From Bigelowiella natans CCMP2755 (taxonomy: Eukaryota; Protista; Cercozoa), in contig ADNK01000862.1 of NCBI GenBank assembly GCA_000320545.1, positions 124,001-188,000 of the forward strand: DNA of 64,000 bases. The letters run 5' to 3'. Below are positions 1,216-34,953 of the stretch, piece by piece; position 1 is the first letter of the stretch, and the number at the start of each line of letters is the position of its first letter. The translations under genes and the position numbers were made by a program. The notes below the pieces were generated by a model. The model was not told the origin of the DNA and ran no database searches. It saw only the letters and a program-made list of their open reading frames with translations.

Positions 1216-1567
1216 GCTAAAATGAGTATTTTTCGGTTTGGCTGCAAATCTCCGGATGATGGATGGATTCTACCCGGGAAGGTGGTTTTGTCTCAGATGA
1301 ACAAAGAGAGGGCATTGGCAATCAAACGACAACAAATATTAACAAATTTTACTATGTCGCACGTGAATAGCAGGACCTCCTCTCGAGAGATTTGAGCACT
1401 CCCTCGAAAAGGAAAAAAGAATAGCCAGTCTCAGGGAGCGACCTTGTCTGCTGGTGTGAGCGAGTGAGCTTTGACAACGTATTCACACAGCGGCATGGCC
1501 AAAAGCTATTTAGATTGTGAATGAATTTCAAGATAGCAGCGAAAAGAACTTCGAGGGAAACTTGGAA

Positions 1568-1962: not shown

Positions 1963-1998
<36 letters not shown>

Positions 1999-3157: not shown

Positions 3158-3189
<32 letters not shown>

Positions 3190-5071: not shown

Positions 5072-5109
<38 letters not shown>

Positions 5110-6843: not shown

Positions 6844-6883
<40 letters not shown>

Positions 6884-6899
6884 GTGCGTGCGCGCGCGC

Positions 6900-6930
<31 letters not shown>

Positions 6931-7830: not shown

Positions 7831-7896
<66 letters not shown>

Positions 7897-10065
7897 ATCA
7901 TTTGTTCTGTTTCCCTGCCTGACCGATCTCCCTCCACCACTGTGTTGGTACTACCGCCACATCTTCAAGATCCCGTGAGCTCGGCAGTCCTGGGGTTCAC
8001 ACGTGTGGTAGCGGCTGAATATCCACGGCTCGAAGCATGCTTCATTGATCTCTGCCCCGGAGAAACCGACCATGCCCGAGATGCCGCCACTCTCCTCCAA
8101 GAGGCGAGACTCTCATCTTCTCCATCATCATCGTCCTCGTTCGATCGTTCCACTGCTGAGGTTACATACCGACGCCGACGCCGCTACTTGCCATCCCTCC
8201 AGCGATTCCCAAAGGGCGCGCTCACCAAGCCCGCCACAAGAGGTAGCACTAAGGGCGGTGCCTTGCTGTTAAGCATAACCGCAGAAGAGGAGCAGGAAGG
8301 CGGGTGCTGCTACTTGGTGACCGGAGGGCTAGGGGGGCTAGGCCGCCACCTTGTGTCGCGTATGTGCGGGCAGTGGGGCGCAAAACGCGTCATACTGCTC
8401 GGCCGTCGAGAACCAAGTAAGTCGCGGGGTAGTAGCGTTATCGGTCTTCAGTACACGTTGGAAATAATTCGATCAGAGAGAGTTGGGAAAGAGGAGGAGG
8501 AGGAGGATGAGGAGGAGGAAGAAGAGGGGGGATTTTCTCTGTGTCCCTGTCTAGCTGTTTATATTTGTGCATCTCGTCTCTATCGTTGGCAGCATATTTA
8601 GAAATACATTTCTCACTCCTCCTCCATGGGTGTTGTTTTCCTACTATTATGAGCCAATATGTTCGTGCTGATACAATGCTGCATTGACTCAATTTTCCAG
8701 GCGAGGAGGCATGCTTATGGATGAAGACCGTAGAGCAGGCGACTAGTGCGAAGTTGGTGGCGTGGCGGTGCGACGTGTCTAAAGCAAGCGAGTGTATAAG
8801 TGTGCTACAGAGAGCAAAGCGTGAGGTCGGGGCTTGCCGGGGCATCTTCCACCTCGCAGGAGTGGTAGGGGATGGGACGATCGATTCCATGAGCTGGGAG
8901 ACGTTTGACCGAGTGATATCTGCAAAGGTAGATGTTTTGTTGTCATGCTGATGGTAGTGATGGCGGTGGCTGTGTGGGTGGGAGGGAGCAGCTGATGCAA
9001 TGATTTACCTCGCTTGCTCGTTCCTGCCTCTCCTCCTTTTCCCTCTCCTTCTGCTCCTTCAGGTTGATGGCTCCTTGCACCTCCACGCGGCTGCGATGGA
9101 GACTGGAGCACCCCTGAAACACTTTGTTTTATTCTCTTCGATCTACGGGCTGCTAGGATACAGGGAGCTCAGCCATTATGCAGCAGCAAATGCCTTTCAA
9201 GATGGCCTTGCTGCGTATCGCCGTGCCCAAGGATTACCTGCACTCGCAGTGAGCTGGGGGACGTGGGCAGGGGCAGGCATGGCGCATCGGTTCGGCTCTG
9301 GATTCGAGGCGTAAGTCACATTATACAAACACAAAAAGAGAGAAATCGGGGAGGGGGGGAGTGGGAGGTGGAAGGAAGCGCAGAACAAGTAGAGCAGCAA
9401 GGAGTGTTTGACAAAAGAAGCAAGTAGCACGTTGAATGCCGCTAGTTGCTAAGTTCTCCGTAAAGGGTGTTCGTGAAGGACAATGATGACGTTATTCGCG
9501 ATGATGATCAGGTACTGGCGCGGCCTGGGAATGGGATTTGTCCCTCTGGATGGCGGCATGGAGGCACTTGGGTCGCTGATGCAGCTAGCCAGTAGTAGTC
9601 ACACCGGTGATACTGCTACTATTACTGCATCATCAACGCCCGTGCAACCACATATCTCCCACGGCGCTGTAATCCCAACTGAATGGAAGCGATACGCAAA
9701 GACACGACGGGGAGTGCCCCATCCCCTAGCAAAGCGGATGGTGGATGAGACTCTACGCGAAGAACAGCAGCTGCCGCAGCAGAAACAGCTTCCTCCCCTA
9801 ATCGCAGCTCTCGCGTCGGCGTTGGCGTCGACCGGGAAGGACGATAGAAAGTCCCGGCTTATGATAGTAGCCGCGCATGTGGCGAGAACTGCCACTATGG
9901 TTCTTGGAGACGACGAGGAGGACGGCGGCGAATTGGAGGACCTCGATGGGTAGCATCATTAGTAGTAGTAACGGCATATAGTAGGGGAACAAAGGCAACA
10001 GTTCGTGAGTTTTCCAATTAAACGCATGGTGCGATAGAATCCCTCATTTTCTTCCCCTTACTTCT

Positions 10066-10105
<40 letters not shown>

Positions 10106-10697
10106 TCTCTCCCCCCCCCCCCTCCTCTCATTCGCTTCTTTCCAGGAACGTTCCCGTGGCAGAGATTGGGCTGACATCAATTCTGGTCGTAGAGCTCTCG
10201 TCTCGCCTCACAGATGATACCTCCCTCGAGGTACCGGCCACCCTCATCTATGAGGGGGTTACGATAAACGGCGTCGCAAAGCTGCTTCTCGACCTCATTC
10301 CAGAAGAGCTCATCGCGTCATCTGCATCCTCCTTGTCATCTACTTCACCGTCCTCCTCCTCCTCCTCCTCCTCCTCCTCCTCCTCCTCCTCTCCCTCGCC
10401 TCTCGTCCAACAGCTGTGTGTCATCGAACCGGCCAGGCGCGAGGCAGTATTGCTCGCTGCGATTACGGAGATTGCCGCGGAGACAACCGACCAGGAAGTC
10501 GATGATATCGACACGACAGTTGCAGTTGCTGAGATCGGCCTTTCTTCCATGGGTAATGGTGCGTGTGTGGTCATATTTCTGGGTATGACCCCTCTTTTTG
10601 CAAGATTCTGCGAAGAAGCAAAAATAGAGAAGGGGGAAGGTCGCAGTGAGAGATGTTGCTTTTTGATTGGGCACTGTCACACTTACAAACACACTCA

Positions 10698-10734
<37 letters not shown>

Positions 10735-11177
10735 GTTGTCTATCAGGGGTGGTCGACCTGGCTGGGCGGACAAGCGAGCTGCTTTGTTTAGAGGAGCAGG
10801 GGCTGGATCCTGTGGCGCCGACCCTCATCTACGAGTGCGTGACCCTCAAAGAGCTGTCCAAGCGCCTCCTAACGACCGCTCTGGGAGATCTTTTATCTGA
10901 GAACGACAATAATAAGAAGAAGCGAGTTGGGGGTGCCAACCAACCACAAGATCAACGCAAACAACGAGGGCGGAATGACGGCAAGGAAGAAATAGCGCCT
11001 CATCCTACGACCACTCAGGAGGAGCGTGTTCAAATTGCAATTTCAGGTATATCTTGCAGGCTCCCTGGGCGGGCCAACAGCCCGAGAGACTTCTTCAACT
11101 TACTGAGGCAACGTCAAGACTGCATAGTGCCACCACCTTCTGACCGGCCCAACAATGGACGACCGAGCGGGTCGCAT

Positions 11178-11229
<52 letters not shown>

Positions 11230-12859
11230 TTTCTATTGATTTCTTTCTCGATATACGTCTAAACCGTCATAGTCAAGCAACACCGACGATTCTATTCCGC
11301 CATGTATTGTGCTGTCATAGTAGCAAGGCCAACGGCCCGCTGCGGGCAATCCATACGACGCCTCTTCCAATAGCCCTCTTCTCAGCTCACCCTCGTATGT
11401 TGTCGTCTCTGATGTACCCGTGTTGCATTGCGATTAGATACTTATCCGGAACTACGCTGTGCGGGTTCGACCGTGACGCTTTTGGGGTGTCTGCGGGTGA
11501 GGCGCGTGCAATGGACCCTCAGCAACGTCTTCTTCTCGAGTGTGCACGGGAGGCGATGGAGGATGCAGGCGTCGTGTGGGAAGCTCAGGATGACGACGAC
11601 GACGACGACGACGACAATCATAACGAGGAGGCGAATGTGTATGTAGACTACGGCGCATCACCATCCGCATCATCGTCCTCGTTGCCGGAATCTCCAAGAC
11701 CACGGCTACGCGACCGACGTGTGGGTGTGTTCGTGGGAATATCTGCTTCTGACTACGGCAATATGTGCCGAGATCATCCTGGCGCCCCGCCGCCCAGCGC
11801 ATACAGCGGCACGGCCTGGTCGCTCTCAATCGCAGCGAACCGCATATCGTACGCATTCAACTTGACGGGGCCCTCGGTGTCGCTGGACACGGCCTGCTCG
11901 TCCTCCTTGGTCGCCGTTGACATGGCGGTGCGAGCCATCCGCCAAGGCCAGTGCCACGCCGCGCTGGTCGCAGGAGCCAACATCCAGCTGCAAGAATCCT
12001 GGTCGAGAGCCTTCGCCACAGCGGGAATGCTCTCGGTGTCCCACCGCTGTCGCTTCGGCTCCGATGCAGCAAACGGATACGTGCGTGGCGAGGGTGTTGG
12101 GGTGATCTTCATCCATGCTACCGCCGTAGCCTCCCAAGCCATCCCTTTCTTCCTGCGCCCCTCCTGCCCTCCGTATGCTTATATTGTGGGGTCGGCTGTG
12201 AACCAGGACGGGCGCTCGAACGGCCTCACAGCTCCAAACCCAGCAATGCAGGAAGAGCTTCTCAGAGCAGCCTGTCGTGATGCTGCTTCTTCGGTTGCCG
12301 TAGGACCGAGAAATAGTTCCGGTAACAGCGAGCAGCTGATATATCGTAGTATAAAGTACGTCGAAGCCCACGGGACAGGTACACGGCTAGGTGATCCTAT
12401 AGAACTCAAGGCCCTTGGAACAGTGCTCAGGGGGGAAAACAGCAGTAGCGGCAGTCGTGAGCGTCTTATTATTGGAAGCGCAAAAAGCAACATTGGCCAC
12501 CTCGAGTGCGCCGCGGGTAATGATGCATCGATGTTGTGTGTCGATCTGCTGTAACATTTAGCTCACTTGCTCCTGCACACACACGTTTTCGCTTGTTCTT
12601 ACTGCTGCTACTGACGTACGCTTTTTAATCAGGGATCGCGGGTCTGATAAAGGCGTCGCTCATTGCCAAGACATCCATTATCCCGCCCACCCTCCATGCT
12701 GAACTGCCAAACAGAGTGAGTAGTGAATAGTGTGTGTGTAGTCGTAGTGGAGAAGTAGATGAAAAGGAAAAAAAGAAGAAAAATGAAAGGAAGTTGCAAA
12801 GCAGTACCAAGTAATGGTGGTATCGATATATTCACGGATGTAGTGATAAACGCACAAGC

Positions 12860-12905
<46 letters not shown>

Positions 12906-15353
12906 CCAAATGTTAAACGTGTAATTTTATTCGCTCTTCATTACCCAGCTACCCATCGAAATCTCGCGCTTATCATCGTCATCATCTTTGTTGTCTTCTC
13001 TTTTTTCATTTCTCGTAATCATCACATAGCTTGTTCCATGGGAGCCGCTTGGTCTCTCCCTGTGCTCTGAGGAGACGCGATTAAGTGACGATGATGGCGC
13101 TGATAAGAACGAGAGTAATGGCGATGGAATTAACGGGAGCCTTGAAGGAGGAAGAAGAAGAAGTCCTGTTATAATCGGTGTTAGTGGCTTTGGATTCGGC
13201 GGTACCAACTCGCACGTCCTTATCCAGCAGCCACCACAACGCAAGGTCATCAGTAGCAGTACCGAAACAAAGCAGCGGAGATGGCGCCTGCAGCAACGGC
13301 GGCAAGAGCATCGCGACGGTCCTCCTTTACCCTTCCTCTTCTGTCTCGCCTCTCACTCGTCGGATGCCCTCATGGCTACCGCCACTGGTCTACTAATGTA
13401 CGTAAACAGCCAGCTAGAAACCAGAAGAGGCGGAAAGGAAAACGATAGTTTGGTTGAGGAGTACGAGGAGGTTCCAGTATCAGCTCTCGCAGTCGCGAAG
13501 TCCCTGGCTCTCTTGCGGTCGCATTCACGGCGCCTGCGTCCTTTCCGCGCCACCTGCATCGCCTCGTCCCTCGACGATCTCGCACATAGTCTGGAGACTC
13601 TCATCGCAGCTACTGCTGCTGCGAATGGAAAGTGTGCCGTGAAGAGAAAGGCAGGGACAGGATCTGCAGCACTTGCTGCCAAAACGGCTGTCAGCAGCCC
13701 CGTTCAGGAGCGCGTGCTGCATTCTCGACCTCGCATCGTGTTTCTGTTCACAGGTCGTCTAGAGCTTAATGCCATGCTTACGATTAGAGTGTCGCTCTTA
13801 ACAACAACGACAATGATGATGTTGATGATGATGACGATAATGACTAGTGTAGAAGCTGATGATAATGCGTGATATTCGCTCTGCGTCCATCTATCCAACA
13901 TCAGGCCAAGGTTCCCAGTATGCTGGGATGGGGTCCTCCTTGTACCGACGGTCGTCAGTGTTCCGACACGAGTTTGACCTCATCGACAAAGCGCTCATGG
14001 AGACGCCTGGATGGCAAGGCTACCAAGGCGAGCGCAGCCTGGCAAATCTTCTCCACTTCTCCCCCCCCTCCAACACCAAAAGTGGCAACGAAGATAGCGA
14101 CGCTGCTGCTACTGCCGCGGAGATCATGTTCCAAGATGCATCTGTGCTGCAGCCGGTGATGTTTGCTCTTGAATACGCGCTTGCCTCTTGGTTCGTTGCG
14201 CACGGAATCAGGCCCCAGGCCACCCTGGGTCACAGCTTAGGTGAGATAGCGGCCTTTTGTGCTGCCGGGAGCCTCACGCTCCAAGACGCGTGCCTTCTAG
14301 CTGTGGGCCGTGGAAAGGCAATGAAATCTCTGGTAAGCGGCAATGACGGCCAAGGCCGTGGCGGGATGGTAGCCGTTCGTGCTTCGGAGAGCGATGTTAA
14401 AGAGGTGCTCAATGCAAGCGGATTTTCTGGTCTTGTGATCGCCGCCGTGAATTCCCCCCTCGGAGTTGTCGTCTCTGGCGAAATAGCGCAGATAGAGCGC
14501 GCGGTCCGCGTGTTCAAACAGGAGAAGAAGTGGAAGGCCAAGCAGCTGGATGTGAGTGTCGCATTTTCCATCATCGTTCACCCTTTCGTAGCAGTGATGA
14601 AAGAGTGTGTAGCTCTGAAATGAGAGCTTAGCTGTAGATGATATTGATGATGAAGATGATGCCAAAAGAGAACAACAACACAACAGCAAAAGAAAAGTAG
14701 GACACGATCGTCATGCTCATACATTACTAATGGCGCTGATGCGAGTCCTCTGTCATTCTCAACTGTCCTTTTGAAACCTTTTTTCACACTCGAGTCTTCT
14801 CTGTTTTTGAACCGACACACCTTCTGCACCGTTGGCTGTGTACTTACATCTATGTAGGTATCAGCTGCCTTCCACTCGCCTCTGGTCTCCCCATGCCTGG
14901 CGTCTTTGCGGAAGGCTGCCGAGAAAGTGAAAATCCTCCCTCCCCATCACGGCATCCGCCTGCTATCTAGCGTGGATGGCAAGGAGGTAAAGGGAGGGGA
15001 GGATGCAGCAGAATACTTTGTGCGACAGGCAAGGAGTCCTGTGCGGTTCATGGAGGCACTGACTGCGAGCAAATGCAACGTGACGTTAGAGATTGGCCCC
15101 CAGCCACACCTCTCCGTCCATGCGGAGCCTGTGTTCGCCTCACATGGTGACGTGAAAAAGCAGGAAAAGAAGACCAAGACCAAGAATTCTAGGCAACGTG
15201 GCCGCATGTTTAATGTAATTCGCACTCTGCGCAAAGGAAAGGACGATATCAATCAGATCTTCCAGGTAATAGTCATGGGAGGGGGGGGGGAGCAGATTTG
15301 ATGTCATCCTCGTCGTCAGTCGATAGAACAAGTTACAAACAGCATATCTAACA

Positions 15354-15397
<44 letters not shown>

Positions 15398-16388
15398 ATC
15401 TTCTGTCGGCTAGGCCCTTGCATCACTCTATCGCTCTGGAGTCCCTTTGAACATGCGCGCGCTTTTCCTCCGATTGCAGCAGGAGGAGGAGGAGTACCAG
15501 CAGAGAGAGGAAGAGAAAGAGGAGGGGAAAGGACAACCGCAGCAGCAGCAGCAGCAGCAACGACAACGACAACAATATTTAGTGCGGCTGCCACCATCTG
15601 GACTTGCCCGGAAGAGGTACTGGATCGATCTTCCTGGAGTGCCCTCGCCACCACAACTCTTTCAACACAGCTACGAGGAAGAAGCAGCAGCCAAATGTGA
15701 CGGTACCGAGAGTGTGTTCCAGTGTACGTGGGAGGAGGATAAGGACCAGGAGAGATTTGCAGCTGTTGGTGGTGCTTCAGGCAAGAGCTGGGTAGCAGGA
15801 GCATCGTCATCAACGTCGTCATCAATCGTAGTAGTGACAGATAGAAAGCTAGGGCCATCATCTTACGAATCTACTCATCCAACAACCAAATCATCATCAT
15901 CACGATCACCATCTTCGTCGCTCTTCACAAGGACGCTGCTTAGTGCCTTGGACACGAAGGTTGTCATTGTCGTTGTCGTCATCGTCGTCTTCGTCGTCTT
16001 TGTCGTCGTTATCTTTGTCATCGTTGGTCGTCTACGCTTTCTTCTTTTTTCATTTTAAATTGGCAGCGGAACTAGTAGAGCAGTAGGTAGCAGCTATCAG
16101 AAGAAGCAGTAGAAGGAAAGGAATTAAAAGAAGAAGAAGAAACACGTACTGGTAAACTAGGAAAAAGTATGAACTCCCACGTAGCGATGTTGACCGGTAC
16201 GTTCGGGGATGATGGTGGCACTCCTACCATCTATTTGTTCTACCTGCAGTTATCATTTTTTGATTGATGTATTTAGTGGGTGGAGAATCGTCCCAGGAGC
16301 CTCGCAGCGGCAAACGAGCTGTTAGATCGCTGCTCTGTCGACGGGAAGCAACGAGGAGACACCATCGTCTACGTGCAGCATCAGCAGG

Positions 16389-16425
<37 letters not shown>

Positions 16426-18678
16426 GAAGAAGAAAGAGGTAGGCGAAGGCCTTGTCTCCTCAACATTTGGACCTCTATTCTTCCTACTAAAGGCTCTACA
16501 ATTGCGCCGCGAATCCTCGCGGCCAAAGCACCTCATCGTGGTTACGTTCGGTGCACACGCTACTCTCTTCGAGGAGCAGCGATCGCCATCGTCATTATCG
16601 CAATCGTCTTCCCCTTCGTTCTTCTCAACAATCTCCGGCTCGATTCTGCAGGGCTTGTGCCGATCCTCACGCATGGAGTTCAGGGGGAGTCTGAGCATCC
16701 GACTCATCGATCTTCCTGCATCAGCAACGACGCCAACAGCAGCGGTGTCGTCATCGGTGGCGATAAGAGCAGCAAATCGAGTTGCTACGGAGGTGTTTGA
16801 CGTGGTCCGTCTCGGTGGAACTGATGATGCTGCTGCTGGCATTCCTGACGTGGACGTGCTGTACCTTCCCGCAGTGCAGGAGGGGGGGGAGACGGCAGGT
16901 AGCAGCAGCACCAATGCCAGTGACAGCAATACCCATGGTAGAGAGATGGGTATGAGGCGCTTTGTGCGCCGTCTAGAGGCCGTGGGTCGTGCCCACGATT
17001 CTGCCATTCCTCGCCATCTTGGCCGCCGTTTCGATGCATCGCCATCATTGCCGTTTCCATTGTCTCCCTCTCCCCGTGGTCATGTGAATGATGGAGTTAA
17101 GCGCAGCACATACGCGATCACGGGCGGGACTGGAGCATTAGGCCTCGTGATGGCTTCATGGCTGCTAAGACGAGGAGCACGGCAAGTCTTGCTGCTCTCG
17201 CGATCTGGCAAGGTCCATGACTCCAACGCGCACCTCTACGCCGCTGCAGAAGCCCTCGTGAGGAAGCAGCAGCAAGAGGAGGAGGAGGAGGAGAGGGTGG
17301 ATCGGACGGAAATGAAGGACGCAAAGGAGGGCGGTGCCGTACCGCCAAGATCAACAACAATAGGAGGGCGGTTGAGTATAGTGAAGTGCGACGTGAGTGA
17401 TAGGAAGGAGGTGTTCCGATTCGTTCGGCGTGTGAGAGTCAACCTCGCAGGGGTCATCCACTGCGCTGGCGTGCTCGACGACGGGCTGCTCCAAAACCTG
17501 ACTATCGACCGAGCGCACAAGGTCCTGGTCCCTAAGGCCGTTGGCGCGCAATGGCTGCACGAAGCAGTGCTGAAGTATATCGAAGAAGCAAAAGAGGGGG
17601 GGGGGCATCGTCGTCAGCGGTTGAAGATGTTTATGCTATTCTCATCCGTGACGAGTTTGATGGGCAATGCTGGCCAGGCAAATTACGCCGCAGCCAATGC
17701 GTTCCTGGACGGTCTAGCACGACACAGAAGGAGGTTAGGACTGAGGGCTCTCAGCGTGCAATGGGGGCCCTGGGCAGACGTTGGGATGGCAGTCGCTACT
17801 GTGGTAGTAGTCATTACACTAGTAAAACTTGCAAAATATCAAGAAGAGCAAGTCAATACATATTCGTGAAAATATGAATCCCCCTCTCCTCCCCTCCCTT
17901 CCTCCCTACCTCCCTCCCTCCCTTGCGCTCTCCTCTCTGTGGACCCAAGTGTGGGTGTGCAAACAGCCGCAGAGTTGTCCAAACAAACTTCTTCATGGTC
18001 ATCATCATCAGCAGCAGCAGCAGCATTTTTCACTAATCAAACCCCGTATTTTTTTTGTCTTGGTTGTCCTTAGCTGGCCAATACGCGTAGCCAAAGCAAG
18101 TCGCTCTACGTGGCCATGACGCCTCCGCAGTGCCTTGCACCTCTTGACGGCCTCCTTCTTATGGAGAACGAAGACTTCGCAGCGGGAGGAGGAGGAGGAG
18201 GAGGAGGAGGAGGAGGGGGGGGGGGGGGGGAGGGGGAGGAGGAGGCGAAGGATAGCAGATTCTACGTCGATTACGCTGTTGTAGCAATCTGTAGATTCCA
18301 GCAGCAGCCCTACTCCTCCTCCCCCCTCCCTCGACTATTCAGCCGCATGCCTTACTATCGGTCCTTCCTCGCTCGCTCGCTGCCCTCTGCTGCTGCGACT
18401 GTGGAGATGGCAACAACACAGGCACAGCAACACCGTCGTCATCAGCACACTGCCACCACAACTAGATTGCTTCCTGTCGTGAATGAGAAGGAGGGGGCGA
18501 TCGAAGGGATGGAGAAGAAGGGTAACGTGGTAGTAAATGGAGGTGCTACGAGCCGCGATAACGTTGCACGAGAATGTATAGCAATTCTCGCGGAATTTGT
18601 CAGTGACGGGATTTCACTTTCCGAAGATACGGAGCTCATGGACCTGGGCATTGACTCCCTTGATTGGACCGAGGTCAT

Positions 18679-18720
<42 letters not shown>

Positions 18721-19365
18721 ACACCACCGTGTCATCGATATCCATAGCATGCGTGCGCGTCCTCATCATTCTCATTCTGCCTCCATATTTCTACCAACAC
18801 TACTCAGGTTTTGGGCCAGGTGAACCGTCGAATGCAAGTGCACGCAATGCCCACGTTGGTCCTAGAGATAACCGTTGTACGCGACCTTATCGAGTGGGTG
18901 GCGGGGCAGCATGTCCAAAATCACCAGAGCGTCTCCACTACTACGAAGAATGCTAAGAGCTATGATGACATTACGAGGCCGATGCAGATGGGACCTTCCC
19001 AGCTACTCGTCAAACAGTCCAATAATGGAGCATTCAGCAGCAACGTCGCTGCTACCACTACCACCACGTCGCCCTTTTCCTCTCCATCATCAGCCACTGT
19101 AATGAGAGGATTCGAGAGACTCTCTCCGATGTCTGCTCAAAGGAGGGAGGAGGAGACGAAGAGGAAGAGCATCAATCTCAAAGATATCACACTCGGTGTC
19201 ATCGATGTGGTAGTTTCTGGTGGCTTTGGGGAGCAAGCAGACATCGTAGACGTAAAGGAGGAGACAGACCTCAACGAGCTTGGGATCGATTCGCTGGACT
19301 TTGTTGAGTAATCCTCGCCCATCACCACACACACATAATATTGATATATACATGTATTATATATT

Positions 19366-19429
<64 letters not shown>

Positions 19430-21922
19430 GCTGGCATGCTATCTCGTTTAAAGTAACGTCAACGTCCTCTCTAGCATCATCACTATCAGCGCCATCATCA
19501 TTATCACCACCGTTGTTGATGCTGAGCATGAAAACTATGCAATGTATGCCCAGGCTGCTCCGAGCGGTGGGTACGCGATTTGGCGTGGACGCTCCTCCTA
19601 CGCTCGTTCTTGAGGTTCAGTCGGTCGGGCAGCTCGCAGCTTACGTGCATGGGCAGTTGACGGAAGGAGAGATAAGTGGTAGGGAGGACGACGAAGAGAT
19701 TGGAGAAGGGGACCGCCTCCACGAGTCCTCGCACAACAACTCTGCTTACGACTCAAAGGCGGCAACGTCAATGCATCAATCACTACTTGGTCGGGATGAT
19801 GGGAAGCAGCAGCCCCTGTCCTCTTTTTCCTCGAAGCCGGTTTCTCCTGAGCAGAGGAGAGCGCTGCAGCTCGAGCACGAGTTGAACGTAGTCATGATGC
19901 CCCAGGGTGTCACCCAGATGGCGGTCAATATTCTAGGCTCGCTCCTACGTCTGAGCGTGTATGCAGCAGGCTTTGTACCCATCGTCCTCATCGAGGAGAG
20001 AACGCACTTTTTCTCGGAAAGGTTTTCAGAATAATGATGATGGCGATGATGGTGGTGGTGATAATAACGATGATGGTGATGGTGATGATGATGATGATGA
20101 TGGTTGCTTGCTCTTGGGCGATACGAACACTAAAGGTATAAACCATATGCGACAGAGTTGTTAGGAGATCAGGAAAACGAAGAGAAAAACCTAACGATAT
20201 TGTCAATCTTCATTGATGTTAAAAATCTTCTTCTGCTACAGGTATAATAGGGTAGAGGCACGCTCTGCATTGGAGCTTGCCGTGTGGTTCAGCGGAATGC
20301 TAACGCTCTGGACAGCGTGCTCCATGATCGCGCTCATAATTTTCAAGTGGCTTATCGTGGGCAGATATCGAGAGGGGAACTTCCACAGGTACAGCTGACA
20401 AAAAGGAGCAGAGTATCGAGCATATTCTCTCGTTGCCGTCCTTACGGCGGTAGCAACCGTGTCGTAGTAGTCAAAGATTTGGAATGTTAAGAAATGTGAC
20501 GATAATGATGATGATTATTTATTTACTTAATTACTTACTTGCTAGGTGGTCATGGGAAGGTGCGAGATACGGGCTGTATGACCTTGTAGGGGGGCTGGAC
20601 GGGCCTATTGGCTGGGTCTTCAACTCGCTTCCAGACCCCATTCAGAGAACGTATGTTGAGCGACAACAAACAACAACAGCAAAAAAAAAAACAATAATGA
20701 GATCAAGAAGAAGAAGAAGAAGAAGAAGAAGAAGAAAGTGGGATCCAAAAGAGAATAACACTACGATGTCGCTAGTATATCGCCAACTATAGTTACATGC
20801 CATTATTCAACTCAACTCCTCCTTCCTCTCCTCCGTACTCCTCCCTCTCCTACTACTACCACTACTACTACTATCACTACTACTACTTCCGATTACAATC
20901 CCCTTTGCAACCCCCGCAGGTATTTTCGAGCGCTAGGGGCAACCATAGGCTCGGATGTGACGCTGCACGGGGAGATCACCACCGGTTATGACCTGATCAA
21001 AATAGGCAATGGAGCTGTCATCGAGTCCGGCTCATCGCTGAACCCAAGTAATTACTTAACTGAAATAAAATCTCATCGTTCGCCACCATCATCAATAGCA
21101 ATATCAGCATCAGCATCAGCACCAGCATCATCAACCTAACAGATGGTTTCCCCAACACCAGGCGTAACGGAGGACGGCGTTTTCGTGCAATACGCGCGCA
21201 TAACCGTGGGTGCGGAGAGCTTGGTAGCAATCCGATCAAGGGTCGGCCCAGGCGCGTGCCTCGGCCAACGCGCAATGCTCGCACCCTATGCCTTTGCCCA
21301 GGGCTACGTGCCACCACTCTGCGTTGTCACCGGGGAGAATTCCTACCTCAAGAAGCCCAATAGTCCTGGCTACAAACGCGTGCCTCAGAGCGCGCTTGCA
21401 TTCCCCAGAGGCGGTGTTACGATGTTCTGCCTGGAGGCGGTTGCGTTCATATACCTCGCCTTTTGTAGCGGACTGTGCATTATGTCCGGCTTCCTTGTGC
21501 GCGCCGCGGTTGCAAAGGCGATCTGGGAGGGCATTGACAAAGATGGCGAGGAAGACGGAGGGGGGGGGGTGATTAAGTGGGACTTCTGGTCTATCACGAT
21601 GGTTCTCACGATTGCACTTCTAGGAGCCATGCAGGCCTGTGTTTTCCCAGTCGCGCTCATCAACAAGTATCTCTTCACTGGCCGCGTCCGAGCGGGCCGA
21701 CGAGCACTCACGCAGCTTTTGTGCGTGCGCCACAAGGTTGCAGGCCGCTTGATCGCGCTCGGTGATATGATCTTGCTGGCCTACTTTGAATCGACACCTG
21801 TGCAAACCGTCTGGTAGTAGATTGAACATCAACTCGTTAACGCAAGCATGACTATAGTTTCTTCCTCAATATCTCATTGGCAATAATGACATCTATCACG
21901 CACGATTCCATCTGTCCACACA

Positions 21923-21976
<54 letters not shown>

Positions 21977-24036
21977 ATCTCCCCTAACTTAAGAAAAAGG
22001 AGCCTCCTGTCTCTGTATGCTTGAATGCACTGCTGTTCCAATAATATGATTACGATAAATGAAGGTACTGGCTCCTGGGTGCCAACTTAAAGATGTCGTC
22101 GATCGTGAGCTCGTGGGACGGCGTGCAAATCGCTCCGGATCTTCTTACCGTAGGCCGCGACGCATACATAGGCAACGCGCCCTATATCGGGTTTGTAACA
22201 GTGCACAAAGAGAGAATGGAGGTGAGCTTTGACCCTATCGTCGTAGAGGAGAAAGTCTTTGTTGGGCCGTTCTCCCATCTTGCCGCCGGCACGCATATCC
22301 AACGCACGGGCGCGGTCTCAGCGATGGCGATCCTCAAGCGTAACGAAAACGTTCGGAGCTTTACGACAAGGGTTGGCTATAGGGCAAGCGTATCATACCG
22401 GCCGGAGGGCATCTACGCCCCGATGACGCTCTATACGTTCATCCTTGTCTCTCTCAGCTCGCTTCACATGTGCATGGAACTAGGTGCCGTCGGGCTCCTC
22501 TTCGCAGCCGTAGAGTACGTGCTCTTCAACCCGGAGAAGCTAGGCCTGCCCAAGTACGGCGCCAGTAATAGTGTCGTGAGAAACCACGGCGAGTGGATCA
22601 TGATGATGACAGCTGTCGTCCTGGCGGTCCTTAGTGTGCTCTCCTTGCTCATCTCCATCGTGTATATTTTCATTGCTTTGGCTGTGAAATGGCTGACGAT
22701 GGGTCGCGTCGATCCCGAGCGCAAATACCCTTTGCGAGGCAGATACCACGCGATGTGGGTATTCAATCTCCACCTGATGTACCGGGTTAACGGCATCCTG
22801 GGCGCGCTCAAGGAGACTGGCATCGTGTCATACGTGTATCGATGGTATGGGGCACGTGTGGGTCGCAACGTGAGATTCTCCGGGCTCGGCTCTTTATTCC
22901 CAGAGGCTGATATCTACGACATCGGTGACGGCGCGTTCATTGGATGCGCCGCGTATGGGCATAACTTCCTGAGAGGGCACCTTCGATTTGAGCCCATCGA
23001 GATAGGGAAAGGCTGCAGGCTAGTGCGCTCCGGGACACAGGTCGTTCCTGGTGTTCGACTGACAGAAAATATCGATATCGGACCAGGCCTCAATCTTATC
23101 CTTCCTGGCCGTTATGACTCGCCTGGAATGAAGCTCATTGGCATCCCAGGCCGACCATGCGTACGCGAGCAAAGACGGCGCAAACAGCGCCCAGGAGGGG
23201 GAAATAGGGAGAGCGAGGATTTTGACAATATTAAAGAGATAAAGAGAGCCGATACCCTCTCTGGAGAGCAGAAAGGAACGAAAGAGAGTGCAATCCCCCG
23301 AGCCTGGGTACGTAAGGACTTTCTACAATCAGCTGCTAATCATGAACAAGGGGAGAACTTCATTAACACGAGTTTTAATCCGGAGCTTTACGACGACGCG
23401 CTGCTTCTTGGCGCTGCATCACCAGAGGCATCCTCTACCACTCTCTATTGGAGGAAGAAGAAAAAAGGACAGGGATTCTGGAACTCAATCCGATTTGGCA
23501 TCTTCAGCAACAATGAGGAGGAGGTGGTGGATAGCGGCAGTTACTATGCACTCAATGATGGGGGGGGAGCACAAAATGGTAAAGACACCACGATTCATAT
23601 CAAGCCCAAGAAGAATGACGGCCAAAATATCGTAAATAGCGGACGCAGTAGCAAGGATTACAGTTCACAACAAGATATAGTTGATGAGGTTGACTTCGGA
23701 GAAGAAGACATAGAATCCCTCTATAACGTTGTTACCTCCGGTAAGGGTAGCATAAATGGTAGTAGTGATGACAATCATGGCTATCTTGGTAGCAAGAGTT
23801 ACTCCATGAAGGGTCGCCACGCCTCCAATTTTTCCGTCCTCCACGAAGACGATAACAACGATGAGATGCAGGGTAAAGAGCCGAAGGAAACAAAAAATAA
23901 CGTCGGAGGTTTAGTCAGCTATTTCTGGCGGGGCGAAAGCAACAATAAGAATCGGAATAAAGCCATCAAACGCAAGATGAAGCTGGACCCGGACATGACT
24001 CGTGGACTTCTGGATAGCAGTACCACTGATAAATAG
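1568..24036 (+). CDS. Giant hybrid synthase: ThDP-like pseudo-domains, A, KR, ACP, ACP, KS, AT, KR, ACP, ACP, Pls-like transmembrane/beta-helix terminal region (about 5,600 aa, 28 exons)
   Basis: Manual exon model: 1568-1603, 1730-1922, 2031-2500, 2688-3808, 4033-4900, 5117-6761, 7009-7788, 7970-8416, 8701-8927, 9063-9310, 9512-9949, 10146-10552, 10747-11170, 11438-12516, 12633-12715, 13030-13753, 13905-14551, 14858-15265, 15414-15959, 16277-17791, 18074-18673, 18808-19307, 19554-20021, 20242-20388, 20546-20650, 20920-21047, 21162-21813, 22065-24036. All junctions are GT-AG and phase-matched (total 16878 nt, divisible by 3). Several junctions rebuild conserved motifs: LPMTG|SGKI, FTG|QGSQ, LD|VSAAFHS, ECAAG|IAGLIK, GIDSLDFVE|LL. 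Confidence 0.88.
4560..7040 (+). other. Adenylation domain, acyl-CoA synthetase type (ANL superfamily)
   Basis: Motifs YTSGTTGRPKG, APMFH, YGMTE, GEVQIRG, FKTGD, RAKDMILTGSENVY, and LPMTGSGKI with the catalytic Lys across an intron. Confidence 0.95.
7173..9700 (+). other. Ketoreductase 1 (structural plus catalytic subdomains), directly after the A domain
   Basis: Motifs IYRITW, VLGFTRVVAAEYP, YLVTGGLGGLG, HLAGVVGDG, FSSIYGLLGYRELSHYAAAN and VSWGTW. Confidence 0.92.
9850..10880 (+). other. Tandem carrier domains ACP1 and ACP2
   Basis: VAEIGLTSILVVEL...VPATLIYE and VAEIGLSSMGVVDL...VAPTLIYE. The phosphopantetheine Ser is present in non-canonical GLTS and GLSS motifs. Confidence 0.85.
11025..13230 (+). 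other. Type I PKS ketosynthase with intact Cys-His-His triad
   Basis: Motifs IAISGISCRLPG, MDPQQRLLLE, DTACSSSL, EAHGTGT.LGDPIE, KSNIGHLE and GVSGFGFGGTNSHV. Confidence 0.97.
13730..15440 (+). other. cis-acyltransferase, probably malonyl-CoA specific
   Basis: Motifs FTGQGSQY, GHSLGE, AAVNSP, VSAAFHS (xAFH type), PVRF and LEIGP. Confidence 0.92.
15710..18380 (+). other. Ketoreductase 2 (B-type LDD fingerprint)
   Basis: Motifs VFQCTW, GLCRSSRMEF, ITGGTGALG, HCAGVLDDG, GNAGQANYAAAN and QWGPW. No DH or ER motifs were seen between AT and KR. Confidence 0.93.
18550..19665 (+). other. Tandem carrier domains ACP3 and ACP4
   Basis: LMDLGIDSLDWTE|VLG...MPTLVLE and LNELGIDSLDFVE|LLR...PPTLVLE. Confidence 0.92.
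19900..23160 (+). other. Pls-type NRPS terminal region: three repeats of [TM pair + KW..GR motif + hexapeptide left-handed beta-helix]
   Basis: KWLIVGRYREGNFHRWSW, KYLFTGRVRAG and KWLTMGRVDPERKYPLRG each follow hydrophobic helices. They are followed by RALGATIG, WLLGANLK and RWYGARVG and by hexapeptide runs (IKIGNGAVI, LTVGRDAYI, YDIGDGAFI, IEIGKGC). Confidence 0.85.
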
Positions 24037-28175: not shown

Positions 28176-31100
28176 ATGCTCAGGTAAAGAACTGGCATCA
28201 CCGACTAATTCCATGTAGCCCATTGGCCATCATCTAGAAGACAAACTAAGTGTTTCTTTTTGTTACATTAGTTGGATTCGGAATCCAGAGCTCGAACGCA
28301 GCAATCAACATACGACGAAGACTGAAAGTATGGCTGAAGAAAAATACATATGATCTTGACAAAAAAATCAAGGGTGGGCCTTATGAAGCAGCAATGCGTT
28401 TCGCAGCTGAGAGACTGTACAGGTGAGAGCTGAGATGATGCAGTTGGCTGCACACTGGATTTATGAGATTTATTTTTCGTTGATTCCGTTAGATTGAGGG
28501 CTTACAGCGAAGCAAGGCAATGCTATGGGATGATACTGAGGAGCTTCTTATCTGTATGAAACTTAATCTATATCGTTTCACAAGACCTCTACACCCTGCC
28601 CCTTCATATATTCATGAAAATCATAATTCGATCATGTTTCATGCTCGCATTCCCATGTAAGAATATAAATTGATTATGTACACTTGTAGCGCACTGACGA
28701 CTTCAGCGTCGTTTCCACCCTGGATATCGTCCGGTCAATAGAGGCGAAAATTGCAGAGGAGAAGAAGAGCAAGGGACAGCTTCAGGACCTTAAGTATTTC
28801 CTCTAACAATCATAATGCAATTCACAATTTTCTTTTATTAAGAAAATCTTGCTCCAAACAAAATATAATAGAAAATTATCGGGGGCGCTGTTCATGAGGG
28901 CAATGTCTGCGTTCTACGACACGATTTCGGAAGACCCAAACCTGTTGGAGCAGAGAAACTTCGATGCTGTTATGGGTAAGTGCTATATATAACCGTTTGT
29001 TAATCTTCTATTCCCTTATCCCAGTGATTTTTTATTTTAGCATGCCTTGAAGCTATAAGACACACCATACAGCTAATTCTCAATGTGGGTGATGAAGAAC
29101 ACTGTCATCTGCTCTACAATGGGAGCTGCCATATGTTCGAACTTGTGAATGCAATGACGCCCTTCAGTCGTCCACTGAAGATCGTTGAGTTTCTCACCTT
29201 TAGCGTGATAAGCATAGAGACCAGTGTTCCCCTTCTCACCGCGAGGTACGTGCCCTGGCGCACTCGACTCTACATCGCTATCGCCAAGCTATACCATCAA
29301 GCCGGGAAAATTCAAGCCGCACTAAATACGATTACATCCGAGAAGTATGGAGGATTGCCCAAGGTGCTGAATCTGAAATCTCTAGAGAACATCGACGGTA
29401 ATATCCCAATACAGAAGGCCTACACAATAGACATGTGCCAGCGTGCGCTCGAGAGCGAGAAGTTTAAGTACACTGCCCTGCTCGAGGCACCGGACAAAGA
29501 TAAGATAAAAACGATGATCACTGGGTTCTGCAAGACGGAGCAGCATGCGATATATACCCTCGCACAGACGTGTGTTGATCCACGCAGGAAGATTGTCCTT
29601 AATAAATTTGCTGGGTTCGGAAAACATCCGAGCTTTGACCAGGCGAATCCATATGAAGACGAGCAAACGGCCCTGACAAGGCTTGTCGATGCCGCTTTCG
29701 AGCGCGCCATGCCGTTCCTCAAAAAGCTCGCTTCCTACTTGCTGCCTGACTATAAAACAGGGGACGATGAGGACGAAGGCGCACCCAAGATGAAAATAAC
29801 TCACTACGAAGCCCAAAAGTTTGAGCGCAACGTACCACTTACCACGCACATGAGTCTGGTCCGCAGCGCCTTTTCTGTACGAGCATGGGCACAATTTAAG
29901 GAGTTGGTCGAGATTGCATTGATCCGTCTGGATCAGCACGAATATCTGAGCAGCCTCGTCATTCAGAAGATCCTGCCCATCGAACAAGTAACAGCGGAGG
30001 ATATTGCCGCGTGGCAATACGAGTGCCACATGCTCCAAAGTCTTGCACCCATGTGCGACTGTAAGGTGGATGAGGAGAGCGCGCTCAAACTTATTGAAAG
30101 TATGAACGCAGCACTCAAGGGGAATGTGGCGCTCCAGCGTCACGGTGAGATATACGAAGACACTGCGTACTTTCTCTGGACCCTACCAGTGAAAGTATGG
30201 ATCCGACAGCTCAACAAGCTCGAACTTGCATTAAATTCCAAAGAGACTCCAGCGAACGAGGTTGGCGGCTTGAGAGAGAAATGGAGCAGTAAACGCGATC
30301 TCTTGGTCAAGTCCTTGATGGCTATGCATGAGACTTTCCATCGCCTCGACTATGCAGACGCTCTGGCTCGCTGCGGCGTCGCTTTGGAGGTGGTGGAGCT
30401 CCTGCAGCTCTGCAAGAACGTCAAAGGGCGCAGACGGGCGCAGCGCGTCTGCGAGGAAACTCTGCATTTTATTCAGAAGAAAAGTAGTGCCGACGTAATC
30501 CGACTGACAAAAATTGATGGGTTTGGCCTTGTAAAGTGCATCAGATCAGACTTTGATATGCGAGTGAGAATCCCTCCATTCCACCCCCTGCTCCCGAGAA
30601 CCCAGGCGAGTCGTGTTCAGCGCGACCTTCCCGTGCCGACCTCACGAGCAGCCAACATGCTAGCTTCGTATCACACTTCGCTACTTTTTAAATACTTCAA
30701 GCTCACACTGGCAGTTGGATTCGATAGGGCAACGAAGAAAGCCAGGACAGAGTAAGATTTCTCTTCTGTTTTGAGCCAGATATTCATGATGATAGTAGTA
30801 GTTTCGTAGTAGCTATTTGAGGCTTTCATAAGATATTCTACTGTCTCTCGTTCTCTCTCTCGCTCTCTCCTTTGTAACTTGTAACTATTCTCTCCAAATA
30901 TCCAATCCTTATTCATGTACCATTGGTCCTTGTTCGTCCTAGGTACAAGACATTAGTTGACGAGCAGACCTACATGGCACCATTCAAATCGACCTTCCAT
31001 CCGATGACTGCGCAGCTGAAGCTTCCGGAGACATCAAAGAGCATCGAGAACCATCTCATTAAGCTCTGTGGCACAAATAGCACCTGGAAGGCGCTACTGT

Positions 31101-34100
31101 TTATCCAGATTGCATCATTCCGCCGCGAATGTCACGAGCAGCATGAGCTCCTGCTAAAGGCCTCTCAGTGCCTTCGTGCCGCTGAGGAGGAGGAGCGACA
31201 TATGCTCACGCGCGTGGGTATATCATTGGTAGATACAAGAGAAACTCCGACATTCGCCCAGCAGTTTCTGCTTAAACGGCCCACGCCTCCGAGACATGCT
31301 GAAGTAGAAATTGAGAAGATTGTGCATTCATCAGAAGGAGATGAGGCAGGCAAGGGAGACGAATACGACAGAAAGTCGTCGTCGAAGATTCTTCCGGCGC
31401 CATTGCTGGTGACACGGAGTTTGTACAGCGTTGTCCTACGGCCTATCATTCCGCAGTGGTACATCAACCGGTTTCGTCTTCGCGGGTTCATCGTGTATGG
31501 TAAAGAAGCGAGCACGGGGACCAACGTTTCTCAAATCGACTGCGAGCTCCTTGGGACTGGAGTCGAGCACCAGCTGCCGCCCAAAGGTGCCAACATGGTA
31601 GATGTGGAAGTATCATGCCTGGATATCAACACCCCTTACTCATTCGCCGTGGTTGGGGTGAACAAAGACGGCGAGATCGTGGCGGACCGTGGGGCCATCG
31701 GAGCGACATCCAAGCCAATCCAAACTGCCCTTCCCGTACCGCTGCATACGTGCTGGGGGTTTCTAGCGGTCGCGGCGGCCAAGGCGAACTACCCAGCGGT
31801 AGCGGGATTTCTGGATAAAGCTCTTCATCGCTTCGCCCGCGGACGGTGCCAGGTTGAATGCATACCGACCGCTTGGAAGGACCGCCTGCACTTCCAAATG
31901 CTGGATTCTCGGGCCATTTACCTCGCTCCAGAGCCCAACCTGCACCTTCTGGTGAAGCTGCTGCTGTTGCGCTCTGACACATACGATTCCAAAGTGCCCT
32001 CCCTCAAGAGCGGTAAATATGTGTCGCCTATCGGACACGTCGAGGGCCACGTGCTTAGACAGGCCCGCCCCCTCCTTCTGGCGCTCCAGGTGGCCATGGT
32101 CGCCCGAGACGAGGAAGTCGCGAGTAGTATCATCGAGCGCATCTACAACCATATCGTGCAGATATTACCGGATTGCGAGCGATCGGGGTTGGGCCAAGCC
32201 ACCCTTCAGGTCCTCATTCCATGTTATATCGGCGCTTCCTTGATCCGCGAGAAGATGGCACCGAGAGATTGGACAGAGTCCTTCAACGCCGCTACAGCAC
32301 GTGTGCTGTTCGAGCTTACCAAGCTTTATCGAGGACTCGGCGAGTCGTCATCCCAAGGGGATAAGGATAGTAATATTATGACCCGTTTCATCAAACGCCA
32401 TCTCTCGCACCTACAGAGGGCCTCTATCGAGGATGAGAAGGAAGCGGCGGCTGCCAAGGAGAAGGCTGCAAAGCTCCAAGAGGACTTTAAGAAGCGCCGA
32501 GCAGAGGCACTTGAGGAAGCCAAGCAGGAAATTGAAGCTATCCAAAAGGAGCGAGAAGAAGAGAAGAAGAAGCGGGAGGAGGCAGGGGGAGGCAAGAACG
32601 ATGAAGAAGAGCATGAGGACGACGATATGCTTACAGCGGAGGAAATTGCCGCACAGCGCGTACCGGACGTTGATATATCCTTCGACCCAGACCGCCGCAG
32701 CTGCTATCGGTGCATATCTGAAGACAGGGCGCTTGCCATCTTCCTCATTCTCCTTGACAATGAAGCACTCAGCAAGGAAGGTAGCGAGCTCTGCAAGGTC
32801 AGTTGGGCCTCATGGTTGCGATTTAGCAAGAATACCCTGCGTGCCGCAGGCTTCGACGAGAGACTTGAGGGTTGGAAAATGAAGAAAAACGAGGGAGAAG
32901 ATGACTTTGAGGCCCAGATATTCGAAGCGATGCAGAAGGCAACTAGAACTGGCGGTGGGAAAGAGGGTACCCTGGACGATGTACACGCCAAATTGTCACA
33001 GAAGAAGGAACATGTGCAATACCCCATGCTCCTTGCGAGGCTCTGCAGCACCCTGCTTCTCACTTCCACCGATTCAGTGGAAGGGGACGCTGCCTCCTCA
33101 ACCTACTCCAAGGCTTTAGGATGGCTCCAAGGGCAGAACGGTGGTGATAGTAATGTACCCCCCCTCCAGCTTCAAAACCCTTCTCTGCGCTACGATGCAC
33201 TTGCTGCGGTTCACGAGCAGATAAAACGTGTCGTAGCAGAGCATGGGCCATGCACACCCACTGTAGCGATTGATACGGGAGTGAGCTCGTCGGACTGGAT
33301 GCACAACTTCGTGGTTACCGGGCGCGTAAAGCCGACCTTCGACCCAGCCGGTATCGTGCACAAGTGCGGACCAAGCTCCGACGACCCCAATGGTGGAGGC
33401 TTCTTGCTGGTGTTTCGCAAAGGCCACCTCTGCTTCAGGTTCGCAGGGCAGCCATGGATCAAGGGACCAGCCATGAACATGGGGGAATGGAACAATTTCT
33501 CCTGCGAGTACAACCGAACCCACCTCACGCTCACGTGCAATGCGACCTCAAGCAAGGCTGAGGCTGGCCTGATCGCCTTCAACACCGTGCAGCTCCGCTT
33601 CGCCTTGGGAGACTTTGGAAAGCATTTTCGCGGTGAGATTCATGGAATCAAACTCGTCCGCGGCGAGACGATGGCTCATCAGCAGACAGCAACAGCCGAT
33701 GTCGAGGAGAAAGAAAAAGAGGAGGAAAAGAAAGATGGAGAGGAAAGCAAAGACAACGCAGAGAAGACAACGCAGAAACTGACAGCATACCAACTACTGT
33801 GGTTGAGTGAAATCGAGCGCCTTAAAGCCATTTGCTCACAGGAGAAGCTTATTCGCCTTCGCTGCACCAACCGGCAAGCTCTTTGGGAGATCGTAAAGGC
33901 TAGTGGAGACTCGACGGCAGCGGTAGATGAAGGCGACAAGAAGAAGGGAGGAAGCGATGGAAAAAGTGAGGGCTCAAACGAGGAGATCCCGTCCAAAGGG
34001 CAGATTCTTAGCACTCTCGTCTACGGGTGTGTTGGCATCGACGAGCACGTGGACTGGGGCGCTCTTGAGTCCGATGACCTTGGCGTAGAGTGGCGTAAGA

Positions 34101-34892
34101 TGACCGATTTCGCTGCCTCCCACTCCCTCGCTCCACAGCGAGCGAAGAAAGAGAATAAAGATGGGGAAGGTGACCAGGATGCAGAGGGAAAAGGAGAAGA
34201 GAAGAAGACTGAGGAAGAGAAAAACGATGGAGATGGAGAAACGGCAGAAATGAAACAAGAAGACCCCGTCTCCAAAGCTGCAGCGATGAAGGAGCTTCTT
34301 CGCAAGAAGTTCAAACCGATGCATGTGGCGGAGGTCCTTGTGGCGATTGATATCTGGCGGAGCGCCTCCGTAGCCTGTATGGCTGCCAGCTCAGCACGTG
34401 CGTGGATTCAGCTACAGAATACGGTGCGTGTATTCTGGAACTCTATATCATCTATGCGAGCCAGACCCTACCGCGTGGCACAGCTTTCAAGGATAGAGGG
34501 TGCTCTCCGTCAGCAGGGGGGAAAGAAAGGAGATGAAAATGCTAAGAGCAATCATGCTGCGCCTGTTGTAGAGCACTTGCGAAGGATGGGCGAGGCAATC
34601 CTCGAAATGCTGGCTAGACTGTCGGCTGCAGCCGAAGAGGAGGAGAAGGAGGAGGAGATGGAAGGGGGGGAAGAAAGGAAGAAGCATGACAATCAAAACT
34701 CCCCCTCCACGTCATCAACCTGTTACCCTTCTATTGTTGTGCAAAATAGTCCAGAGTTCGCATCCGCCAGAGCCCGAGAGCTGGGGCCGTATCCGAGCGT
34801 TAATAATTCTGAGGAGAAGTTGCTCGGCAATAAGTGCAAGGTACTTGACTGCGTTTACTGGCACTTTCTTCCCTCACACTCTGTAGCAAAAC

Positions 34893-34953
<61 letters not shown>

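Follow-up and report, generated by a model that had tools for sequence, protein, structure and literature searches.

Gene structure

The DNA analyzed here (the window) is a stretch of 64,000 nt from the cercozoan Bigelowiella natans CCMP2755 (assembly GCA_000320545.1, contig ADNK01000862.1, positions 124,001 to 188,000 of the forward strand). From approximately 4022 to 24036 it carries one nuclear gene for a polyketide synthase (PKS), and the 3′ end of this gene encodes a domain like the C-terminal domain of Pls and PosA (TIGR02353 type). Positions are those of the window throughout, and all features described in it are on the + strand. Searches of the open pieces of the gene with Pfam and NCBIfam gave the following order: an adenylating (A) domain of the acyl-CoA-synthetase type, ketoreductase (KR), acyl carrier protein (ACP), ketosynthase (KS), acyltransferase (AT), KR, ACP, ACP, and the Pls-like domain. 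With Pfam, no thioesterase, reductase or condensation domain was found in any open piece of the gene, and the Pls-like domain was followed only by a low-complexity tail. The Pls-like domain stands where a thioesterase would be expected, immediately behind the carrier domains of the PKS and within the same gene, as had been proposed in a first inspection of the DNA (the sequence-only reading).

The long + strand frames were broken every few hundred bases and the gaps held simple repeats, as expected for a eukaryotic gene with introns. Exons were placed by reading the DNA, and their borders were checked by script. Five introns, all GT-AG, cut the region 19900-23160 into six exons (A to F); the frame was kept, split codons fitted, and the total length of the six-exon model was a multiple of three. 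Exon A lies in a frame that is open throughout (19513-20034), holds the first hydrophobic helix (TM1), and ends at 20021 with a donor GT. Exon B (20242-20388; TM2 and the motif KWLIVGR) and exon C (20546-20650; linker helices of repeat 1) both have AG/GT borders and keep the frame. The placement of exon C relied on frame continuity and on its position between exons B and D, and a profile of the repeat unit left it essentially unaligned. Exon D (20920-21047) encodes the motif GATIG and the start of beta-helix 1. Exon E (21162-21813), which encodes the rest of beta-helix 1, TM3, TM4 and KYLFTGR, was supported by hydropathy, by a tblastn match of the related protein P0132, and by the alignment of repeat units. 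Exon F (22065-24036) consists of a conserved part (22065-23160) followed by a 291-residue tail with a high content of S, G, K, N, D and E (23161-24036) and a stop codon; Pfam found no domain in this tail. Microsatellite-like TA, CA, GA and GAT/GAA runs were observed in introns (19330-19450, 21915-21975, 20040-20105 and 20690-20730), and in the coding part the linkers between domains contained extended stretches of Asp, Gln, Glu or Ser.

One open frame (19513-20034) runs through both the C-terminal half of the third ACP (ACP3) and TM1 and so links the Pls-like domain physically to the carrier domain. We saw no sign that the Pls-like region belongs to a separate transcript: the shared frame, the splice sites that keep it, and the same fusion in related proteins all agreed.

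Repeats, helices and predicted fold

From 19921 to approximately 23160, four elements occurred in the expected order three times: a pair of hydrophobic helices, a K-W/Y-L-x-x-G-R motif, a G-A-x-(I/L/V) motif, and hexapeptide repeats. This is the arrangement that the sequence-only reading had described. The first motif followed each helix pair as KWLIVGR, KYLFTGR and KWLTMGR (repeats 1 to 3). The second stood approximately 40 residues farther on (GATIG, GANL and GARVG), with the stretch of hexapeptide repeats next. Helices were called by Kyte-Doolittle hydropathy in a 19-residue window. Six hydrophobic stretches were found, the number anticipated, and they formed three pairs at the places expected of a TIGR02353-type domain: TM1 (19921-19986; score 1.76, the weakest of the six, containing an Arg) and TM2 (20306-20362), TM3 (21425-21481) and TM4 (21605-21661), and TM5 (22441-22527) and TM6 (22618-22674). 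Beta-helix 2 (approximately 22066-22395, with the GANL motif) and beta-helix 3 (approximately 22852-23160) both lie in exon F, and the latter is preceded by TM5 and TM6 with KWLTMGR, two core helices, and GARVG.

All searches, alignments and structure predictions used single exons, so the TIGR02353 scores given below are per exon and not for the whole protein. The conserved part of exon F alone (22066-23160; 73 homologs aligned) was modeled by AlphaFold2 with a mean pLDDT of 94.8 and a pTM of 0.90. The modeled order was beta-helix, two long helices (TM5 and TM6, pLDDT >90), two short helices, and beta-helix. Modeled beta-helices 2 and 3 matched left-handed beta-helix (LbH) acyltransferases with Z scores of 11-13.5 and an rmsd of 2-3 A over approximately 100 residues; the best of these matches were QdtC, VioB, GlmU, and maltose and serine O-acetyltransferases. 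Beta-helix 1 was supported by profile matches and by the unit alignment. A model of the whole domain of an ortholog (P0127:390-1158) had six long helices and three beta-helical regions (pLDDT 86.9, pTM 0.87). Foldseek searches with this whole-domain model returned matches to single beta-helices only, and a sequence search of the PDB found no solved C-terminal domain of Pls, only A domains such as 7wew. The Pls-like domain of the window is made up of three helix hairpins and three left-handed beta-helices, and it is probably anchored in a membrane.

Similarity to the Pls/PosA family

Exon F matched TIGR02353 with 57 bits (E 1.2e-15; profile positions 128-429), and the remaining exons scored 11-30 bits each; exon D reached E 4e-6, and the match of exon E was weak (E 0.12). 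A six-frame scan of the assembly (91 Mb, 3736 contigs) with TIGR02353 recovered the window at 20915-21043 (E 4e-6) and 22072-23082 (E 3e-14). A profile built from 35 bacterial Pls/PosA proteins matched four exon pieces in order (E 1.4e-6 for exon B, 5.5e-7 for exon D, then 2.3e-5 and 4.9e-16). Thus, the similarity to Pls and TIGR02353 asserted by the sequence-only reading was borne out by significant, collinear matches, although these lie far below the curated cut-off of the family. Exactly three repeat units were counted in each of the 33 proteins tested. These results indicate that the terminal domain of the window descends from the Pls/PosA terminal domain.

A word-based, length-limited protein search with the last exon returned its own open frame and one distant protein only, and long relatives stayed hidden. 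An exhaustive search with exon F yielded 561 relatives at E <= 0.001, the best of which included very long proteins that matched at their C-terminal end.

Functional residues were judged by conservation across the family. A His in repeat 3 was present in at least 90% of the domains in each of two alignments (86 and 74 domains) and was kept in the window (codon CAT at 22960-22962, residue 299 of the exon F piece), where it is a candidate general base. Also kept in the window were the K, W, G, R, E, D and H that are near-invariant across the family, and in the unit alignment its repeats kept K-W-x-x-G, Thr, G-A, D-L and G. Several residues invariant in bacterial Pls were lost. Repeat 3 of the bacterial proteins contains the invariant Q-T-H-L-F-E-D-R-V-M-K, and the window reads A-Y-G-H-N-F-L-R-G, with the His kept and E-D-R absent. 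The presence of E-D-R after the His varied with the type of A domain: it was found in 144 of the 158 proteins with an NRPS-type (nonribosomal peptide synthetase) A domain and in none of the 33 with an acyl-CoA-synthetase-like A domain, where H-(I/V)-N-(T/S)-(R/K)-G stands in its stead. PKS-linked members showed (Y/F)-x-H-x-F in repeat 3, without E-D-R, and as a clade they keep Y-x-H-(D/N/S/K)-F. We infer from this pattern that a catalytic core is shared and that substrate recognition differs across A-domain types.

Polyketide synthase modules

The hallmarks of a type I modular PKS were present: Cys-His-His in the KS, G-H-S-x-G in the AT, the catalytic Tyr in the KRs, and D-S-L in the ACPs. The loading A domain (4022-6787, in pieces 4022-4915 and 5117-6787) matched AMP-binding (5.6e-44) and AMP-binding_C (8.5e-18) in Pfam. 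Its best NCBIfam match was PRK06187, long-chain-fatty-acid--CoA ligase (1.4e-93), and the nearest solved chains were feruloyl-, fatty-acyl- and malonyl-CoA synthetases. KR1 (7912-9752; approximately 7969-8418, 8697-9311 and 9513-9752) was recognized by Pfam on one piece (1.4e-7) and by collinear tblastn matches of the relatives P0132, P0130 and P0128; it has the catalytic Y-A-A-A-N but no L-D-D. ACP1, the carrier of the loading module, lies at 10144-10302 (PP-binding, 7.9e-8; also tblastn).

The extension module begins with the KS at 10749-12718 (ketoacyl-synt 8.6e-52, Ketoacyl-synt_C 8.6e-27), which contains DTACSS, HGTGT and NIGH. It is followed by the AT at 13901-15271 (Acyl_transf_1 3e-34; GHSLGE), in which A-A-F-H-S is malonyl-like, and by KR2 at 16931-17779 (Pfam KR 2.8e-51), which has both L-D-D (B-type) and Y-A-A-A-N. 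No dehydratase (DH) or enoylreductase (ER) match was obtained with Pfam in the open pieces of the gene. ACP2 (18545-18969) was identified by PP-binding pieces and tblastn, and ACP3 (19240-19659) by PP-binding matches on 18811-19311 and 19513-20034. In both, an intron stands just after the G-I-D-S-L motif (at 18647 and 19282, respectively).

The sequence-only reading had also held that the module yields hydroxyl rather than amine nucleophiles. The idea of a substrate that is not an amino acid is indirectly supported by the acyl-CoA-synthetase type of the loader, the two KRs with catalytic motifs, the lack of a DH or ER match, and the missing E-D-R.

Relatives with the same layout

Three long proteins, P0132 (4400 residues; a single Trinity transcript of the diplonemid Artemidia motanka), P0130 (4912 residues; Diplonema papillatum KAJ9444505.1, labeled "EryA1") and P0128 (5021 residues; metagenome, environmental eukaryotic contig), shared the order AMP-binding, KR, PP-binding, KS, AT, KR, several PP-binding domains, and a Pls-like end. 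Their tblastn matches to the window were collinear from 4559 to 23196, with 52-57% identity in the A domain. P0127, on a eukaryotic contig of 2.9 Mb, represents the last part of a gene of the same kind, cut by a few introns; when it was included, identity in the A domain was 52-62%. The Pls-like parts of the relatives were approximately 27-33% identical to that of the window. A tree computed by a quick search on the exon F region, with two short fragments omitted, placed the window in one clade with the eleven sequences that had been marked as PKS-linked or as top matches (SH-aLRT 99); every other Pls-like domain fell outside this clade. Eight of the eleven were confirmed to have PKS domains. 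Of the other three, P0124 and P0126 are short fragments, P0126 being that of the green alga Cymbomonas, and P0140 showed a carrier domain only. Judged from these sequences, the PKS-Pls layout is kept in other marine protists (diplonemids and environmental eukaryotes).

The relatives also differ from the gene of the window. P0127 has three ACPs before the Pls-like domain, compared with two in the window, and both P0128 and P0127 carry, unlike the window gene as found, an N-terminal thiamine pyrophosphate (TPP) enzyme of the acetolactate-synthase type. The best NCBIfam match of this enzyme (P0128:1-1050) was 5-guanidino-2-oxopentanoate decarboxylase (E 3.6e-70), with the large subunit of acetolactate synthase close behind (E 1.8e-69). 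With the queries used, no such enzyme was found for the window gene, whether within 20 kb upstream of it or across the genome, which does not by itself show that it is absent. At the P0127 locus (L013), the TPP part lies within 1-5175 and a ketol-acid reductoisomerase gene lies approximately 6 kb downstream (19597-20715). The TPP enzyme and this nearby gene could hint at an acetolactate-like starter acid, or their proximity could be due to chance.

Other arrangements were observed as well. In a sister subclade, P0141 (3060 aa) and P0136 (1344 aa; L021:8250-12284) have an acyltransferase domain after the Pls-like domain. P0139 (1890 aa) consists of an A domain, a carrier (T) domain and a Pls-like domain, followed by a C-terminal 4′-phosphopantetheinyl transferase domain. 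A third class of Pls-like proteins, 1100-2100 residues long and with an acyl-CoA-synthetase-like A domain, comprises P0147, P0149, P0155, P0161, P0167, P0168 and approximately 25 more; it has H-(I/V)-N-(T/S)-(R/K)-G in repeat 3 instead of H-L-F-E-D-R, and its members in the quick tree formed a clade of their own.

Within the B. natans genome, tblastn of its own paralogs against the window gave one weak match. The paralogs were too distant for BLAST, and therefore profiles were used instead. Four more genes were found in which an A domain of the fatty-acyl-AMP-ligase (FAAL) type is joined to a three-repeat Pls-like domain. They are located on contigs C3248 (L009 4207-8682, - strand), C230 (L010), C1602 (L011) and C2848 (L012), and that on C3248 also has a divergent ACP with I-D-S-L. 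These paralogs matched TIGR02353 with E values down to 2e-44.

Other features of the window

The interval 2075-3878, immediately 5′ of the PKS gene, holds two open frames (174 and 398 residues) that had no match in Pfam or NCBIfam and no similarity to the N-terminal parts of the orthologs. Farther downstream, a run of open pieces spans 29085-40869; its first piece matched the N-terminal domain of cilia- and flagella-associated protein 54 (E 1.9e-15), and the other pieces had no family match. An intact frame for a DEAD-box helicase was found at 46965-48224 (DEAD 9.7e-45, Helicase_C 1.6e-32).

Comparison with known systems

In Pls, lysine is loaded on a carrier domain, and the C-terminal domain joins it repeatedly to a free, non-covalently held acceptor (PMC9205021). 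The three repeats of Pls have been modeled as a single pseudo-trimeric beta-helix domain on a six-helix bundle (PMC10522769), and the elements of the P0127 model described above match those of this domain. All characterized relatives are iterative polymerases (PMC10522769, PMC9205021), and all known products of the family are polyamides (PMC10522769). The window resembles Pls and PosA in having the final domain directly after a carrier domain, with neither a thioesterase nor a condensation domain, and in its three repeats of a helix pair and a left-handed beta-helix, each with K-W-x-x-G-R and G-A-x-I-G, and the near-invariant His in repeat 3. It differs from them in that the domain is preceded by an acyl-CoA-synthetase-type loader, a PKS module and two ACPs rather than by an NRPS A-T pair, in having H-N-F-L-R-G for H-L-F-E-D-R, and in being a eukaryotic gene with introns and a low-complexity tail.

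LbH acyltransferases (QdtC, maltose/galactoside O-acetyltransferases, serine acetyltransferase, LpxA and LpxD) have the same fold as each soluble repeat and show that this fold can acylate both O and N and can use acyl-ACP donors. They are soluble homotrimers of one chain, whereas the window encodes three unequal beta-helices in a single chain, interleaved with membrane hairpins. The beginning of the gene can be compared with the cereulide, valinomycin and bacillaene synthetases, in which the substrate loaded by an A-KR-T unit is a 2-oxo acid that is then reduced to the 2-hydroxy acid. These loading units combine an adenylating domain, a KR and a carrier as in the window, but their A domain is of the NRPS type and that of the window is of the acyl-CoA-synthetase type.

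The literature searched contained no description of PKS-Pls or FAAL-Pls fusions, and a 2015 survey of algal PKS genes apparently lists no type I PKS for B. natans (PMC4661987). A PKS ending in a Pls-like domain appears to be undescribed, although the sequences are public.

Proposed function and alternatives

The best explanation overall, which we put forward tentatively and by analogy with Pls, is that the Pls-like domain repeatedly self-condenses the hydroxyacyl product of the module into an oligo- or polyester at the membrane. The module would build a short acyl chain on the tandem ACPs and keep its 3-hydroxyl, because KR2 is of the B-type (L-D-D), both KRs have the catalytic Tyr motif, and neither DH nor ER was found. 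The Pls-like domain would sit on a membrane bundle of six helices, with its beta-helices on the side of the synthase, and the His of repeat 3 could serve as the general base while the acyl group is moved from the ACP thioester to a nucleophile. The chain has hydroxyls and no evident amine, and the bond would therefore be an ester. If the acceptor were the free monomer or the growing chain, as in Pls, repeated self-condensation would give an oligo- or polyester, which would be released at the membrane or pass through it.

Several observations weigh against this proposal. The curated cut-off of TIGR02353 is 423.1 bits, and the best single exon, with 57 bits, is far below it; an intron-free paralog in the same genome scored 152 bits, likewise under the cut-off. 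TM1 is weakly hydrophobic, and the matching helix was modeled with low confidence in the ortholog. The gene model was deduced from genomic sequence, and the members of the clade are known from their sequences. The starter acid might carry an amine. The FAAL-type paralogs presumably load plain fatty acids, which are unable to self-condense, so a Pls-like domain is probably able to act as a simple acyltransferase; LbH acyltransferases are mostly single-transfer enzymes.

The strongest alternative is a single-turnover release, in which the finished hydroxyacyl chain would be moved once to a separate acceptor, for example a membrane lipid, sugar, polyamine or amino acid that offers a hydroxyl or an amine. 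The product would then be a conjugate and not a polymer, in the manner of the acyl-ACP-dependent LpxA and LpxD. Single transfer is made plausible by the four FAAL-type paralogs, in which a FAAL and an ACP are joined to the same kind of domain and the substrates would be without a nucleophile; it also agrees with the structural matches of the beta-helices, the best of which were to single-transfer LbH acyltransferases (Z 11-13.5), and with the replacement of E-D-R and other residues that are invariant in the bacterial polymerases. However, every characterized relative is an iterative polymerase, and the PKS-linked domains are separated from the other types as a distinct clade. Moreover, a one-module PKS that keeps the hydroxyl makes precisely the kind of bifunctional monomer required by a polymerase, and tandem ACPs suggest high throughput. 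Self-condensation and single transfer are nearly equally likely; we slightly favor self-condensation because every characterized relative is iterative and because the kept hydroxyl makes the product of the module bifunctional.

The remaining alternatives are less probable. An amide polymerase as in Pls, with an A domain that loads an amino-bearing acid and a polyamide as product, would fit the polyamides made by all known members, the starter might be an amino-bearing acid, and the TPP enzyme of some orthologs best matches 5-guanidino-2-oxopentanoate decarboxylase, with acetolactate synthase close behind. We nevertheless consider it improbable, since the A domain is not of the NRPS type, the E-D-R that accompanies amino-acid-loading A domains is absent, and two KRs with catalytic motifs point to oxo and hydroxy chemistry. 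Even less credit is given to a degenerate domain that has lost catalysis and serves as a membrane anchor only, with release by another enzyme or by hydrolysis. The scores far below the cut-off and the loss of several bacterial invariant residues are what such decay would produce, but none of the near-invariant residues (K, W, G, R, E, D, H) is lost, the clade maintains its repeat 3 motif, all three beta-helices are retained across distant protists, and no thioesterase or reductase domain offers another route of release. An artifact, either a separate gene or an assembly chimera beside the PKS gene, is very improbable. A prokaryote-style gene caller does report the last exon as a separate protein of 647 residues, and the model was deduced from genomic sequence. 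On the other side, ACP3 and TM1 lie in one open frame, the splice sites keep the frame, and the same fusion was present in a Trinity transcript, an NCBI protein of Diplonema and a eukaryotic contig of 2.9 Mb.

A more specific form of the self-condensation proposal is a eukaryotic, membrane-embedded polyester synthase, in which a single PKS module makes (3R)-3-hydroxyacyl monomers on tandem ACPs and a Pls-derived domain polymerizes them through esters and exports the chain. Although we regard it as rather unlikely in this full form, if true it would be a biological route to polyesters unrelated to PhaC and conserved in chlorarachniophytes, diplonemids and possibly prasinophytes.

To our knowledge, no membrane-embedded polymerases other than Pls-type domains use carrier-bound thioesters, and the characterized domains of this type all make cationic polyamides in bacteria and fungi. 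The same domain at the end of a PKS module widens the chemistry that may be open to it (esters, lipid conjugates) and adds a mode of chain release to those of PKSs. The relation between A-domain type and the repeat 3 motif, with or without E-D-R, gives a testable handle on substrate recognition in the whole Pls family. Diplonema papillatum, which has a relative of the gene, is grown in culture and may be open to genetic tests. The finding points to polymers or lipids of abundant marine protists that nobody has looked for.

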